DNA from: Saccostrea cucullata
Lineage: Eukaryota
DNA length: 64,000 nt
Assembly: GCF_032062105.1 (NCBI RefSeq)
Contig: NW_026932503.1
Coordinates: forward strand, 372,001-436,000
Reading direction: 5' to 3'
In this document: positions 10,810 to 18,695 of the stretch, piece after piece
Layout of the letters: every line of letters begins with the position of its first letter
Numbering within the stretch: the stretch's first letter is position 1
Translations under genes and position numbers: made by a program
The notes under the pieces: generated by a model
Told to the model about the DNA's origin: nothing
Databases searched by the model: none
The model's input: only the letters and a program-made list of their open reading frames with translations

Positions 10810-13349
10810 GGAGGTTGACAAAACACGGATAAGTCACGGAATACGGATGCACGGAATACGGAAATAAGTTTACAAAATACGGAGAAATCACGGATAAAGT
10901 TTTATGTACGGAATACGGAAAATTTATATTACGGATAATATTTTTTTTTTATTATTCCGTAGTTATTATTATCATTTAACTTTTATAGTTTACGGAAATC
11001 CGTATAGCTTTACTGTATACGTAACAATGGTATCCACGGTGACGTCACAAATAGAACTAGGATTTGGCGCGAGATGGATGACGATAAAGCTACAGAAGTT
11101 CAACCTATAATTTCGAATAGGCACTCTAGCCTTAGTGTTAGAGATGTTGAACATTTAATGTTATATAAAGAACATAATTCACAAATGCCATTTCGCCCAA
11201 AAGGTGGCGAAGTTTATGTTTTTCATCCAACAAATGAAATGGAGAATAGAGATTGGGTTGCAGATGGACATAGGTATATTTCAAAGATTTATAATTAATA
11301 AATATATAGCTGTAAAAAACGGTTCTTATACTTTTTTAATCTATCGATTTTCTCTTCTTTCTATCTCTTATCTTTCTTTCCTTTCTTATGCGTAGCTTTT
11401 CATGTGAAGGAACCCGGAAAGTGAAAGGGAACTCCGGAGAATTAAAAAAGTATTAGCCTATTACTATTTGCATATTGCTACGGAGGGGAGAAAAAGAATT
11501 ACAGACAAAAGGTTTAGGAAAGAAGTGTATGTTCCTTTATCATCGAACTTTAAAAATATTTTATATGTAGCCTATGTAGAAAAATTTGTTAAAATGCATC
11601 CCGAAAATGGTGTAACATCTAACCAAAGTGAGGGTTTTAACTGGTTAATGAAAGATCTCAACAACTGGAAGGAAGGGCCAATAGATGCTGTTGTATTATC
11701 CTTCCGATTCTTACAACAATATTATCTTGGTGAAGTGAGACGAGGCAAAGCTGGTGTAGGGAATTTTACTCTAAAATCAGAATACCAACATTTACAGATT
11801 TCTCTTGATGAATATAAACAAAACTCGGATTCTGTCCGTAACTACAAGTCTATTGTAGAATCAATTAAAAACTCAGAGTTCTGCTTCACGGATGAACGAG
11901 AGGAATCTACGGAATCCTCAAACCTGACAAAAATTGCAAAGTCAAAAGAAATTATATCAGGTGACATAATTTCGTTTGTTCCTAAAATGGGATGTTTTGT
12001 TGTAATGGGGTTTACGGGACAATTATATACGGTTCAGGTCTTTCCCAAAGAAAAATGTTCCTGCCTTATTCCCAACAACTGCTGTCATATTATGTCGGTC
12101 AAATTATCACTAAGAATGGATGTTGACACGTCAGTGTCTACAAAATCCGTAAACCTGACAGTATTACGGAAAAATGCCCGTGGTAAAAAGAAGCCAGGTA
12201 GGAAGCAGCCAAGGCCTGGGGATGTTGAATGTGAATATCCTGAAGATAGTGCTGGCAAAAAAGCAAAATTTGAAGCAGACGACCATTCCGTGACAGAGGA
12301 AACAGCTGATGCCCGTAATGTCCGTGCAGAGGAAACAGCTGATGTCCGTGATGTCCGTGCAAGTGTTGAATCCGTGGGTGTAACAATCACGGATGAATCA
12401 CTTGGGCGGATTAATGGTACCGTAGATAACGGATGGCTCGACGATACCTTGATCGATGCAGCTCAAACAATTCCCCTTCATTGCCGGCTTTCAGCCTTGT
12501 GTCTATGCTGAAAAGCCGTGCTTTCGCCCAGTTGTTGACAATTTTATTCAAATTGTTAATACACACCCTAAAACTCATTGGATTATGTTTACAACTATGA
12601 ATGTGAAATTTGCATCCTCGTGCGTTAAACTTTATGATAGCGCAATGTCAAACTCAATTTCATCAGCCGTTCAAATGAGCATTGCTAATATAATGCATTC
12701 TCCAGAGGAAAACATTACAGTTCACTTTATGAATTCTGATGTCCAGGTAAATGGCAACGACTGTGGTCTCTATGCCATTGCAAACGCGGTAGAGATATGT
12801 TTCTGTGGACTTCCAGAAAATACTCATTTCCACACTGAAGCAATGAGGCCCCATTTGATGAAATGTATCACTGACGGAATTTTCCGTAAATTTCCGTCAT
12901 CTCCGTGTAAACGCCAGCAGTCAATAGAGTTTACATTTGAGATGAAGTTGTTTTGCACGTGCAGAATGCCTGAACATGGATTCATGTTTAATTGCACTAA
13001 GTGTCGTCAGTGGTTTCATCCACGATGTCAAAATACAACGCTTAGTGAAAAACAAATTAGAAAGTCTAAAACCATCAAATGTATGGATTGTAAGAGTTCA
13101 TGTTTATTATATAAATCTTCGTTATTAAATATTGTAACATTTTCTCCCTATAAATAAATTCCGTGAATATTACTTCACTTGTTTTATTTTTATTTATAGA
13201 TCTCACGGATTATTCATGTTGATTTTTTAACGTACGGAGATGCACGGACGGAATTATCATCCGTGCAAAAAACAATCCGTGATTTGTACTATTTTCTATA
13301 TTTCCGTGAATCCGTGTTTCCGTGACCTGTCCGTGTTTTGTAAACGGCG
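10810..13349 (+). mobile_element. Defective Mutator-like element in the presumed first intron of the RRM gene
   Basis: 9-bp TSD TTCTGTTTA at 10801-10809 and 13350-13358. Imperfect TIRs (gtt.acaaaacacgga / tccgtgttttgtaaac) with many (C/T)ACGGA subterminal motifs. Confidence 0.9.
11074..13157 (+). pseudogene. Decayed MULE transposase-SWIM-Ulp1-PHD gene with the DDE core deleted
   Basis: RPKGGEVY...DW (cf. RPKAGEIY...DW in the 1014-aa protein), probable intron 11274-11395, GVTSNQSEGFN, SWIM CSC...CCH, HW..D..NGNDCG, PHD FCTC...MFNCTKCRQWFHPRC. Stop/frameshift at ~11455, frameshift at ~12470, and ~300 codons holding the first two catalytic Asp are missing near 11575. Confidence 0.85.
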
Positions 13350-13419
13350 TTCTGTTTATTTATAGAGTACTATGGCTGTCAATCATTTCTTTTAAGCAGA
13401 AAATTTTAGAGTGTGAAAA

Positions 13420-16237
13420 ATGATGCCAAGAATGATGCGTCCAAGACCACCAGCTCCTAGACACGGTGGGCCCGGTCCAATAGGCCCTGGACACAGAGCT
13501 CCAAGGGGAATGGCTCCACAAATGAGTACACAAAGTTATAGTTCTGGGCCAGCTGCCAATGTAGGAAGTGTGACAAATGACCCCAATACAGCCAGGTCCA
13601 GAGTTTTTGTAGGAAATTTGAACACTATTGCTCTTTCAAAGGAAGATGTGGAAGGAATCTTCAGTCGTTATGGGATTGTCACAGGACTTTCCATGCATAA
13701 GGGTTATGCCTTTGTTCAATACAGCAATCAGCTGGATGCTCGGCGAGCCTGTGGTGCTGAGGATGGAATGACTTATGCAGGACAAGCTCTAGGTGTGTAC
13801 TTGTTATCAATCATGTAAATGTTTTGTTATCTTGTTTAAAGTTCAGTTGAACTTCAGTATCTTGAAAATTGATGTCTAAAATACCACAAATATGACAAAG
13901 TGAGTTGGATGTCCCAATCACTTTTCCTTATTTAATTTAACCTTGATACATCCAATACTTCTTAGTGTCATAGAGTTGAAGTTTGTCTATACTTGTATCC
14001 ATTGATAAACTTTAAGAGTTTGAAATTTCTGATTAGTTATTCTCTTAAGTGAACTTTTATAGATATCAATATTGCCTCTGAGCCAAAGCACAGACCAAAT
14101 CAAAAGACAACACCCACTTCACAGACTTCCAGGTATAATACTGTTGTTTACATAAATGTCATTGAAGTTTTTGTAAACTAAGATGGTACAGTGTATCAAT
14201 ATAGAGTAAAACCTATCTAATTCTGACATGCACTTGGACACAAATTTCATATAGGAATAGGCAAGATGTCACGTTATAAAGAGGGGGCCTGTAAAAAGAA
14301 TTGAAAATATAATATTGCAGATGAATTTACAGTAAAACAGATTGCTCCAGTGTCAGTTTTCACTGTATTTAACCTGTAAATTGCATTTTTTAAATAGAGA
14401 AAACATTGAGACATATGATTTTATTAAAATTTGATAAAAGAATTTTGGTATGGCTTATTTCATATTCAGTAGTACTCAGTTGGAATCCTCCGTAAGTATG
14501 TTCATTGAAATAAAATGGGACCAAAGATACTTATTTGTAATCAAAAGTGAATTGTTATTTCAAAAACAAATTTTATTTGTCTAGTGGTGCGTCACGTCTC
14601 CTCAGCACACAGAGTGGTCCTCCAGCCAAGAAGATGAGGACAGACTCAGGAACGGGGGGCATCAAGAGGACACTGGTGAATCTTACCTCTGGAAACAGTT
14701 CTACCGCTCCAGCCAGCAAAACTATTACTCAGCTTGCACAGGGTAAACTTTGTGTTGCTTTCATTTGCCATCTCATGTTAGAAAGAGAGAAGTCATGCTT
14801 GAGAAAATTTATCTCTTATTTTTTGTTAAATTAATAAATTTGCATTTACCAGTGTAAATATTTTAAGATATTAATTTTGAAAGTTACAGACAAATCTCTA
14901 CATTTATGGACATTTATTTTGCAGCTGCCAAAGATGTATTGATTTGTGGTGTGTGTAAGACGTCATTCAGCAGTCTCCATAGTCTAGCCCAACACAAGAA
15001 GACGCCGTGTCGACTTAAGATCTCCTGTCAGTGTCAGAGTACCCCTCCTCCAGGTGGGTTATCCAATCAGATTCACTGTCCTTTATGATATAATTATCAA
15101 AATCATTCCCTCAACTGAAACTCCAAATAATGGGAAGATTTATAATTTTACAATGTCAGTGCTTTCCCTTAAATTTAAAGTAAAGGGTAAATAGAGATCA
15201 ATAGTAACAGGCGAGAGGGTTGATGTTTAGAAAAAAAATCACTAAGGGCCTAACAACAATTACTTTAAAAAAAATTTTTAATGTGGCAAATTTATCAAGT
15301 AAAGTCAATTTGGTTGGTAGCTGGTTCTTTGGGAAAACACTGCAATGTGTAAGAACAATTGATATTTGCTTGCTTAATTAGGATTTTTTTTCTTTGATTC
15401 AGAGTCCCCTGAGCCTTCCCAGCTGGTGTGTGCAACGTGTAATGCTGAGTTTGCAGCGGCATGGGAACTCTGTCAACATGCACAACAAGAACATAACCTC
15501 AGCATATACAAAGTGGTAAAAAAAAATTTGAATTTGCTCTGGAAGGGTTTTCACAAGGGCTTTGTTTTGTTTTGTTTTGAACATATTTATTGACAAAAGG
15601 ATTGGACACAAGTTCCAAAAACATAAGGCTTTGTCAAGTTGAATACTGGACTCCATCATTTTCTGACAAGCACTTTCATTTTGTATTTATCATGCAGATC
15701 CAGTGCTGCAAATATGACAGCCCGAAATAAAATTGACATCATGCTATCAATTTTTTTTTCAAATCTCAAAATTAATTTTTCCTATTGAAGAGATTCTACT
15801 CTACTGACAAATATGTTATAAAATATGCTTATTTTTCAGGAGGAAGAAACAGTTGAGGTTACTGTTAAAGAGGTAAACCTTGAAAGTGCAACTTTTGTTT
15901 AAGATGCTGTAGATTTACATTTTGCATAATATTTCATTTGTACATGTATGTAACCATAACAGTGAAACAATTAACAAAGAAGTGAATTAATCAGTGTGGT
16001 AGGATTTTATAAATATTTAGTAGATTAGTTTTATAAACTTCCTGTTGTAAGAATTCAATTTTAGGTCCACCACCCCAAATTAAAAAACTAAATGATAACG
16101 ACCCCCCGTCCCCTCTTGCAATAAATTAATAAATACATTTACCTAATAACAGATGTTGAGACAAATGTTGCTTCATTTGACAGGAGGTTGTACTGGTGGA
16201 TGGTGAGAGTAATGAAGTGAGTGAGAATGGTCAGTAA
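13420..16237 (+). CDS. hnRNP C/RALY-family RRM protein with two BCL11-like zinc fingers and acidic tail, 309 aa; exons 13420-13792, 14063-14132, 14585-14742, 14925-15053, 15403-15515, 15840-15872, 16184-16237
   Basis: All introns are GT-AG and phase-consistent (930 nt). RRM SRVFVGNLNT...HKGYAFVQY...AGQALDINIASEPK is hnRNP C-type. PPAKKMR is NLS-like. DVLICGVCKTSF...HKKTPC (CCHC) and EPSQLVCATCNAEFAAAWELCQHAQQEHNLSIY (C2H2). Candidate polyA signal at ~18349. Confidence 0.88.
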
Positions 16238-18695
16238 ATATCAGGAAGCTACAACAGAGGAGTGGATCCAAAGGACAGTATGGGGCATGTGACAACACAC
16301 ACTTTTCATTTAACCCTCACTTTGTAACATATTTTCCCATAAATGGACAACTACAATGTATAAACTTTTTTCCTCATTGTATTTTCTTGTCTCTTTGCCT
16401 ATGAACTGTTTTTATCATTCATTTAAATGATCATGTTATCAATGACTCATAATGTGTACAGAACTGGTGTGTAACTTGCTCATGTTTCTTTACATTCATT
16501 GAAATTTTTAGCAAGATGGAATTGTTTTGCGTATTGTGTCTTTTTTGTGAATAAGCATGTTCATGATCTGGTTTTTACTGTGGAATCATTCTTGTTAAGT
16601 TCATCATTTTTTGTCAGAGTTGTAACTCGAAATTGCTTATAAAAGGCTTACTGTTAGATTATTTGTTATTCGAAAAATAAGGTGTTCATATCATGAAGTG
16701 TGGTAATGATCTTCATAAATTGATGTTTTGCAATTTGAAAATATTCATGTTCCCTCGATTACCTTAGTTAATTGGAGTATCAATTCATTGTAGATCTTCC
16801 TGTATACTTAAAATTTGAAGATAAAAAATAACCCAGCCTCCAGTAGTAGAACTGATAATACTTTTTGTTAGATTTGTTTCCTTTTTTTCGAAGAAACTTC
16901 ATATTGCAGGAGTATTATGATTTTTATTGAAAGAATAATTAAAAGTATTTTTAATTTTTACGAATTTCATTTTCAGACATGTTTTTCAGTATTGTTTCGT
17001 ATAAATTGAACTGGATTGTACTTGTAATTTTTTTGTCAATAAATTTTGGGCTGGTATTTTTTCTTTTTTTGCATTTTTTTCCCCCGATATATGTTAAAAG
17101 AAATGTTAAGAATATTTTTTTCTTTCCTTTTTTTTTTTTTTCGATAGAGAAATATACTATTTAAAAACATTTTTTTTTGAGGGGGGGAGGGGTGGAAATG
17201 AGGAATCTAAGGCCCAAATATGGGTTTTTAAATGTGACCATTTAAGCTTTGGTTCTTTTACAAAGGACTATAAACTTTGATTAGCAAGACTCCATTTTTC
17301 TTGTGCTAAAAAATTAAGTTATTGAAATTCATGTTGAAATATTGTAGTTTCAATGTCCAGCAAAGTTTTCTTGTTTTACTTGAGAAGAAAAGGTCCAAAA
17401 ATATATAAAATCATGGATACTTATTTTAAATTTTGAACGATTTAAAGATGAATAATTTCTAAAACCAGTGGCGTTGAAGTACTTACTTTATAATCATATC
17501 TTTCTGAGAAGAAAAAAAGATCTTGTATCTTTTTTTAAGTGCATGGATATACTAAATTGAAATACTTCTTCATTTCAAATGGTATCCATATCTTGAAAGA
17601 AAATAAATGATCTCAAATTTTTGCCATATTGACATCCAGTTTTTGTGCAGATATTGTCATGAAGGAAGTCAATTCAGTATTTTTGGGGGAACCCATTGTC
17701 GTGATTCGTTTGAAAGGTAATGTATGATCTTAGAATATACATTGGTTGTTTTGAAAGAGGTCTGTGAAAATAAATATATATATATGTACTTTTAAAAAAA
17801 AAGCATCGGGCAGGGAACTATTTAAAGTTTTTTTTTAAGGGTTGTTAACTATATCCATGTAAAATATGAAAGAAGTGGTTGCAAAAAGCCTTTTCATCCG
17901 AATTTTTAAGTATTACTTGCCATCAATAAAATCATTAGTGTTCATTATTTATACTGATGTGGCAACATTTTCTGTGAAATTGCCTCGAATATTGGCGATT
18001 TTGACATGGAGAGGGAAGACAAAATCAGTTTTACCATGGAATAAATCAATTGGAGAAAAAAAAATGCATAAAGACTTGTATGAAGTAAAGGCTACAGAAT
18101 TTTTAATTTTATACTTTTTTGAACTTCATTGATATTTTGTGATAATTTTAGAAATCCATATAGATCTTTGTTTCAAGGTATAAAGAATTGTCCAAATTTT
18201 TCTCAAATTTTGTTGACAATGTTGTTTTAAGGCAGCTCACTGAGGGAAGAAAATCAGTATTAACTGACAGCAAAAGACTTGCCAAAAGTTCATAATATTT
18301 TGGTTAAATGGTGCAATAATAGCATTCCAGTGTGTTTAAAACGATGTGAATAAATAATATTAAAAACAGCATTGTCTCTAGTTTTCATCTCCGTGGCTAC
18401 ACCTCTGTTGAAACAAAGAGGAATGGGTTCATTGGATACATGAAAATGAGTTATCTTCTGTATCTGTATTGTTATGTCAATCCCTTAGGGCTTTAAGTAT
18501 CCAGTTGTATTTTTATTGGCAAGCTAAAGAAGAGGACGTCTTCTGACGGAGTTAAAACTGCGAGGTTGATGAGGAACATATAGAAAATCATTTGGCCCAT
18601 TTCAGATGTTGAGGAAAATTAGTCGGGATCGGTATTCCGTTTATTCCAACACAAAACTTCAACGTGAGACTCGTCCACCGGTAAAAGACTGAAAA

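Follow-up and report, generated by a model that had tools for sequence, protein, structure and literature searches.

The 64,000-nucleotide stretch of the Saccostrea cucullata genome analysed here (contig NW_026932503.1, positions 372,001 to 436,000; hereafter the window) carries the oyster's gene for a heterogeneous nuclear ribonucleoprotein C (hnRNP C)-type protein, in which the RNA recognition motif (RRM) shares one chain with two zinc fingers placed where vertebrate hnRNP C has its leucine zipper. The second of these, which we call finger B, is by its sequence a homologue of the first C2H2 finger (ZnF1) of BCL11, and the first, finger A, falls more loosely among protein-binding CCHC fingers such as BCL11 ZnF0. 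We lean, with somewhat better than even confidence, towards the reading that the oyster protein is an old bilaterian form of hnRNP C in which the RRM would bind U-rich nascent RNA and the fingers would act as a contact module for self-association. To our knowledge, hnRNP C has been studied almost only in vertebrates, and the zipper known from them would be the exception, since in most invertebrates the protein has two zinc fingers that standard domain scans miss.

A single transcript joins the RRM to both fingers

The gene lies on the forward strand, and its seven coding exons (Table 1) join into one open frame of 309 amino acids across six coding introns, all with GT..AG borders. In transcript contigs from four RNA runs of four studies, aligned to the window at 13300-16700, all six coding joints are present exactly where the model places them. 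Because single contigs (1036, 1651, and 1778 nt) span the RRM exon and both finger exons and continue into the 3' untranslated region (UTR), the RRM and the fingers belong to one mRNA. The earlier note, made from the letters of the window alone, had read one spliced open reading frame that joins an RRM to two fingers and an acidic tail; the contigs confirm this, including the junctions 14742/14925 and 15053/15403, and the peptides quoted there are present as written. The tail consists of the last 28 residues, which are rich in Glu, Asp, and Val. A gene-fusion artefact was considered and rejected on the strength of the RNA contigs and of conservation across phyla. Contigs and window disagree at 3-4% of positions, and the contigs therefore derive from another allele or a close relative. 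In the searches described below, single exon sequences or the database orthologue P0001, from Magallana, served as queries, and the joined 309-residue protein was used only to check the frame and to count identities.

The locus is the hnRNP C/RALY orthologue and lacks the zipper

The RRM exon of the window matches Pfam RRM_1 (E 6.8e-10). Among solved RRMs, P0001 is closest to those of RALY (1WF1, E 8.2e-28) and hnRNP C (1WF2, E 1.4e-27), with the next RRM at 9e-8, which bears out the hnRNP C/RALY type proposed in the earlier note. These alignments show about 60% identity to the vertebrate RRMs and extend through the D-I-N-I-A-S-E-P-K motif, and the order that follows in hnRNP C, RALY, and RALYL (D-I-N-x-A-x-E-P-K after the RRM, followed by a basic patch and finally an acidic C-terminal tail) is the order found in the oyster. 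The basic patch, G-P-P-A-K-K-x-R, is kept in the family alignment and is likely a nuclear localisation signal; the linker exon that holds it (14585..14742) matched no Pfam family. A search of the 1.17-Gb genome with the RRM at E<=0.001 retrieved only the RRM itself, so the genome holds a single HNRNPC/RALY/RALYL orthologue, and, as judged from its RRM, this locus is established as that orthologue. The oyster model is identical at 303 of 309 positions to an 'uncharacterized protein LOC133206311' of Saccostrea echinata and at 265 of 309 (86%) to P0001, whose cluster includes the RefSeq protein 'heterogeneous nuclear ribonucleoprotein C-like 3'. Elsewhere among its relatives the RefSeq names vary between 'hnRNP C-like 3', 'hnRNP C', 'Raly-like', and uncharacterized.

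The main difference from the vertebrate proteins is that they have a zipper tetramerisation domain where the oyster protein has two zinc fingers. The leucine-zipper structure of hnRNP C (1TXP) found no match in P0001 at E<=1, whereas the fish homologue P0135, used as a positive control, matches it at residues 195-222 (E 1.9e-4); nor does the linker exon of the window show any heptad region, which agrees with the earlier note, where no coiled coil was seen. Since the oyster fingers start at residue 208, within the interval that the zipper spans in the fish protein, they occupy the zipper's place.

Finger B is a homologue of BCL11 ZnF1

Finger B is a C2H2 finger with ligands C253, C256, H269, and H274 (spacing C-x2-C-x12-H-x4-H) and with the elements E-P-S, S/A-A-W-x-L, and I-Y in that order. 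It fits the ZnF1 signature E-P-x3-C-x2-C-x3-F-x2-A-W-x-L-x2-H-x-Q-x2-H-x3-I-Y with H-x4-H, and shares with ZnF1 of BCL11A and BCL11B the ligand spacing, the E-P-S lead-in, the S-A-W-x-L helix start, the H-A-Q, and the I-Y end. When the finger B exon alone was compared with the whole genome, the best non-self match (E 0.0016) was a ZnF1 finger that opens a 738-codon exon; as the other fingers of this exon match human BCL11A ZnF4-6 (E 5e-48), it belongs to the oyster's BCL11 gene. A profile of finger B, built from the window and 33 family representatives, scored 44.7 bits against BCL11 ZnF1 in the genome (E 1.5e-8), with the next finger at 28.2 bits, and in the reverse search BCL11 ZnF1 found the finger B exon at 28.6 bits, with the next match at 19.

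The likeness is specific to ZnF1 among the fingers of BCL11. Across 120 BCL11 orthologues from molluscs, arthropods, a brachiopod, nemerteans, and fish, the finger B profile had a median best score of 45 bits and a median of 2.6 bits for the second-best finger, and in 95 of the 120 the score exceeded 30 bits, always at ZnF1. Profile-profile alignment with hhalign gave 99.6% probability and a score of 92.8 to ZnF1, against scores of 20-30 to ZnF2-6. Over the 33 positions of the finger, the family consensus and that of ZnF1 agree at 22, and the window's finger shares a median of 17 identical residues with individual ZnF1 fingers, fish BCL11B included. At the helix start, which reads A-W-E-L-C in the window, A-W-D-L-M in the hnRNP C family, and A-W-[FSV]-L-L in BCL11, four of five positions are kept; the third residue of this patch differs, being Asp or Glu in the hnRNP C family and hydrophobic in BCL11. 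Taken at the level of sequence, these comparisons establish finger B as a true homologue of BCL11 ZnF1. The likeness had been put forward in the earlier note, together with the prospect that the fingers might score no better with BCL11 than with generic C2H2 models; for finger B, the scores with BCL11 are far better, the match is reciprocal genome-wide, and the profile is specific in the 120 orthologues.

Finger A belongs to a wider CCHC class

Finger A has the ligands C208, C211, H224, and C229 (C-x2-C-x12-H-x4-C). In hhalign comparisons it is closest to BCL11 ZnF0 (97%, score 44.6), followed by ZnF1 (31.6) and ZnF2-6 (17-22), and in hmmsearch its profile scores 21-25 bits at ZnF0 and at most 13 at the other BCL11 fingers. 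With ZnF0 of BCL11A and BCL11B it shares the CCHC ligands, the D-[ILV]-L-x-C-G-x-C strand, an F at +3, the H-K-x3-C end, and its place ahead of a ZnF1-type finger in a phase 1-1 exon. The ZnF0 tetramer is known from PDB 8DTN. The features that define ZnF0 are a spacing of 14 residues between the second Cys and the His and a hydrophobic knob (PMC12006351; bioRxiv 10.1101/2024.12.10.627839). The spacing is 14 in 45 BCL11 ZnF0 fingers and 12 in 34 of 34 sequences of the hnRNP C family alignment (the window's exon and 33 family sequences); hydrophobic helix positions number five or six in BCL11 ZnF0 and two in finger A, which has no I-L-I-F-I-type knob.

Against solved structures, the best finger matches of the finger A profile are the U-shaped CCHC finger 1FU9 and BCL11A ZnF0 (9BV0 and 9B4P). 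The match to 1FU9, the best of them, is weak (18.8 bits, E 0.01), but FOG and U-shaped fingers share with finger A both the C-x2-C-x12-H-x4-C spacing and the H-K...C end; they differ in sitting in multi-finger cofactors that bind GATA factors. The identification of the first finger as BCL11 ZnF0, made in the earlier note, thus stands in part. It is right as to the CCHC ligands, the strand, the HK...C end, the order of the module, and the phase-1 borders, and it does not hold for the spacing, which is 12 and not 14 residues, for the hydrophobic helix patch, or for the Pfam score, which falls well below the cut-off; other CCHC fingers in the genome, moreover, score as well or better on the finger A profile. 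We accordingly place finger A in a wider protein-binding CCHC class that includes BCL11 ZnF0 and the FOG/U-shaped fingers, and not within the ZnF0 family proper.

Unrelated fingers of the form C-G-x-C-x12-H-K-K-x2-3-C occur at loci L038-L046 of the same genome (on C15732, C9854, C230, C5401, C23205, C19994, C10137, and C18071), each scoring 15-18 bits to the Pfam model of BCL11 ZnF0; they seem to form a loose class outside any Pfam family. Finger A itself is followed, five residues past its last ligand, by a C-x-C pair (C235 and C237) within the motif C-x-L-R-F-x-C-x-C. The pair does not occur in that form in BCL11; in the family alignment it is kept in most members, the hemichordate included, and lost in a few. 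Two cysteines alone cannot hold a zinc, and the pair might be an inter-chain site or provide alternative ligands.

The order and exon design of the finger pair match those in BCL11

In BCL11, the exon with ZnF0 is of phase 1-1, and the one after it is entered in phase 1, within a Glu codon, and begins with ZnF1. The oyster hnRNP C gene has the same arrangement, with finger A on a phase 1-1 exon and finger B opening the next in phase 1, again inside a Glu codon, although this codon lies three codons further upstream than in BCL11. The phases alone would agree by chance about 1 time in 10. What argues for common descent is that order and phases agree while finger B is also a true homologue of ZnF1, and the finger pair most likely shares ancestry with the N-terminal ZnF0-ZnF1 pair of BCL11. 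The two settings differ in that finger B follows the CCHC finger after about 23 residues in the oyster protein and ZnF1 after about 100 in BCL11, and in that the host is an RNA-binding protein in one case and a DNA-binding repressor in the other.

A second gene on the reverse strand of the oyster genome (G000:C12276:999540-1000490, L015 and L031) encodes a BCL11-type ZnF0 that scores 56 bits to PF25491 and, about 0.8 kb downstream of it, a degenerate ZnF1-like finger that lacks the Trp and scores 26.7 bits. This gene could be a paralogue of BCL11 or a further gene with the finger pair.

The finger form is widespread and probably older than the zipper

A search with the RRM exon found 33 cluster representatives that have an RRM, a CCHC finger, and a C2H2 finger, and a search with the family alignment added 103 further proteins, 102 of which have both fingers, so that more than 130 proteins in total carry the RRM with both. 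Carriers among molluscs and brachiopods include oysters, scallops, gastropods, a chiton, and Lingula; among arthropods, they include aphids, beetles, ants, mosquitoes, a termite, a copepod, a millipede, ticks, spiders, and a sea spider; and the architecture occurs further in a trematode, the nematode Pristionchus, and the hemichordate Glandiceps. The members from Lingula and the hemichordate have a longer acidic C-terminal tail. Some lineages depart from the common plan: in the nematode protein P0046 (Pristionchus fissidentatus), both the RRM and the finger pair occur twice, and the crinoid proteins P0006 and P0423 have two RRMs and only the ZnF1-type finger. As these predicted proteins read, the finger module has been both duplicated and trimmed in different lineages.

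Homologues from fish and hagfish have no fingers. Because the finger form is found across protostomes and in a hemichordate, it is probably ancestral, and on this distribution the finger architecture is most likely the older bilaterian state of hnRNP C, for which the zipper was substituted in chordates or vertebrates. A word search with the finger region of the hemichordate protein returned that protein only. The earlier note had pictured a possible swapped tetramerisation system; the survey across protostomes, in which RRM and both fingers turn out to be widespread, takes away the oyster novelty and reverses the direction, with the vertebrate zipper as the probable newcomer.

Whether the architecture had already been described in invertebrates, a question the note had left open, has a divided answer. 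Many RefSeq models of these proteins exist with their fingers unannotated, and a literature search found no paper describing fingers in invertebrate hnRNP C. Precomputed Pfam annotation shows the RRM alone in 119 of the 120 family proteins listed, which would explain why the module has so far gone unnoticed. The fly gene CG42458 has been used as the hnRNP C orthologue with no mention of fingers (PMC5570092). The architecture, as far as predicted proteins represent it, is old and widespread but unannotated.

The database clusters also contain two hypothetical proteins of 32-44 residues attributed to 'Mycobacterium', which fall in the 90%-identity cluster of the Aedes albopictus member P0097 and are most likely mosquito contamination of bacterial assemblies.

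Possible roles of the fingers

In vertebrates, the zipper tetramer of hnRNP C is central to measuring and packaging nascent RNA. By homology, the oyster RRM would bind U-rich nascent RNA as it does there, and the two fingers would form a protein-protein contact module and not a nucleic-acid reader. We infer protein-protein contact because of four features. First, the relatives of the fingers, ZnF0 and ZnF1 of BCL11, are non-DNA-binding and mediate multimerisation (PMC12006351). Second, at the helix positions that would contact bases, finger B has Ala, Trp, Glu, and Gln and finger A often has acidic residues, which is the pattern reported for non-DNA-binding fingers (bioRxiv 10.1101/2024.12.10.627839). 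Third, the two fingers are isolated and do not form a tandem array with the canonical linker. Fourth, they lie at the position of the zipper. Such a module could allow the protein to associate with itself, at least as a dimer through finger B and perhaps with β-strand pairing of finger A, which would make several RRMs act together and so do the job of the vertebrate tetramer.

The most conserved element that finger A has in common with ZnF0 is the β-strand D-[ILV]-L-I-C-G. In models of BCL11A, this strand pairs two copies of ZnF0. According to PMC12006351 (citing Science 386:1010), ZF0 of BCL11A forms a tetramer, and ZF1 serves as a dimer interface in models. Since the strand is conserved in finger A but the tetramer-forming hydrophobic helix face is not, the expected assemblies would be dimers or open chains and not a ZnF0-like tetramer.

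In an AlphaFold2 model of the finger module, both fingers are predicted at a local confidence (pLDDT) above 90. When the two-finger model was compared with the PDB by Foldseek, the matches were all to generic tandem C2H2 arrays and none reached E<=0.001; fold does not tell such small fingers apart.

Several observations weigh against self-association through a BCL11-type pair. The AlphaFold2 model shows two independent fingers joined by a floppy linker, with a predicted template modelling score (pTM) of 0.40. When the orthologous finger module was predicted as a homodimer with zinc, the score was 0.24 against a mark of 0.32, a value that speaks neither for nor against binding. In finger B, the central residue of the stretch that is hydrophobic in BCL11 is acidic. 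Finger A has neither the 14-residue spacing nor the hydrophobic helix start of five residues from which the core of the ZnF0 tetramer is built (PMC12006351); it reaches only 14 bits to the Pfam family PF25491 (CCHC_BCL-11A), over profile positions 1-11 and with a cut-off of 27, and a genome scan with PF25491 misses the finger A exon while finding BCL11 and one other gene (56 bits). Finally, seven CCHC fingers at other loci outscore BCL11 ZnF0 on the finger A profile (28-32 against 25.4 bits).

Alternatively, the fingers could be a docking site for another protein, either BCL11 itself, through pairing of finger B with ZnF1, or a third partner common to both, and could so link nascent RNA to a chromatin repressor. 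The surface residues E-P, S-A-W-x-L, H-x-Q, and I-Y are kept in both families across phyla, to the extent of the consensus agreement given above, and a common ligand or a common homotypic interface would account for this more readily. FOG-type CCHC fingers, a close match of finger A, bind other proteins, and the binding of FOG to GATA factors through its CCHC fingers is established. BCL11A and BCL11B also hetero-multimerise via their N-terminal fingers (PMC12006351). However, the residue in the middle of the helix patch, acidic in the hnRNP C family and hydrophobic in BCL11, may prevent mixed pairing, and we regard docking as unlikely.

A further alternative is that the fingers are additional binders of RNA or single-stranded DNA that widen or sharpen the target choice of the RRM. 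C2H2 and CCHC fingers are frequent in RNA-binding proteins, these two share a chain with an RRM, and they give weak, sub-threshold Pfam matches to zf-met and zf-C2H2 types. The first three features listed above as pointing to protein contact (the closest relatives being BCL11's non-DNA-binding fingers, the residues at the helix contact positions, and the isolation of the fingers from any tandem array) speak against nucleic-acid binding, as does the acidic nature of the surrounding tail, and we rate this role as distinctly unlikely.

A broader proposal, which we put forward as improbable, is that the ZnF0-ZnF1 pair is an ancient portable assembly module common to BCL11 and hnRNP C, and that in invertebrates the two proteins co-assemble via their ZnF1-type fingers or a common partner, coupling nascent transcripts to a repressor that recruits NuRD; the gain of the zipper would then have cut this link in vertebrates. 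To the remaining possibility, that the BCL11 likeness is a generic C2H2 resemblance with no special kinship, we give hardly any credence: in single-sequence scans, BCL11 chains do come below generic C2H2 models and fingers of CTCF or ZNF423, and the PDB holds no ZnF1 structure for the finger B exon to match, but for finger B the reciprocal best matches in the genome with a gap of at least 16 bits to other fingers, the 45 bits at ZnF1 against about 3 at other BCL11 fingers, and the hhalign result against its controls exclude it, and it partly remains for finger A, given the scores of other CCHC fingers on its profile.

The protein bears on BCL11 as well. ZnF0 and ZnF1 are needed for stable BCL11A protein and for the silencing of fetal haemoglobin. 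A second very old family with a ZnF1-type finger offers an independent set of sequences for finding the residues that matter in assembly, and the oyster, mosquito, or tick proteins would be simple systems for asking whether the finger pair is a general oligomerisation device.

Gene structure and other features of the locus

The exons of the gene are collected in Table 1. The first exon was placed by 19 letters of RNA contig X17 that precede position 13398 and match the window solely at 10303-10321.

Table 1. Exons of the S. cucullata hnRNP C-type gene, in window coordinates.
Feature	Position	Strand	Remarks
Non-coding first exon (5' UTR), 3' end	10303..10323	+	Donor GT at 10324, spliced to 13400; sequence AAG|GTTTGT
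Exon 2 (coding exon 1)	13400..13792	+	Start codon 13420; Pro/Arg/Gly-rich N-terminus; most of the RRM, residues 62-123 (~13603-13788)
Exon 3 (coding exon 2)	14063..14132	+	End of the RRM with hnRNP C-type D-I-N-I-A-S-E-P-K motif
Exon 4 (coding exon 3)	14585..14742	+	Ser/Thr/Gly-rich linker; G-P-P-A-K-K-x-R basic patch; no coiled coil
Exon 5 (coding exon 4)	14925..15053	+	129 nt, symmetric phase 1-1; finger A 14933-15010, then C-x-C pair 15026-15034
Exon 6 (coding exon 5)	15403..15515	+	Entered in phase 1; finger B (C2H2, BCL11-ZnF1-type) 15411-15509
Exon 7 (coding exon 6)	15840..15872	+	Acidic micro-exon, 11 codons; joints 15514/15839 and 15870/16182 in 4/4 RNA runs
Exon 8, coding part	16184..16237	+	End of the acidic tail; TAA stop 16235-16237; 3' UTR continues past 16700

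The first intron (10324-13399, 3.1 kb) holds two long open reading frames, at 11468-12511 and 12456-13157. The second of these encodes a PHD finger (Pfam E 6.8e-6), has an N-D-C-G motif like that of cysteine proteases, and resembles a transposon remnant. Upstream of the gene, an ETS-type motif, C-C-G-G-A-A-G-T, lies at window positions 10236-10250, about 60-80 bases before the end of the 5' UTR exon.

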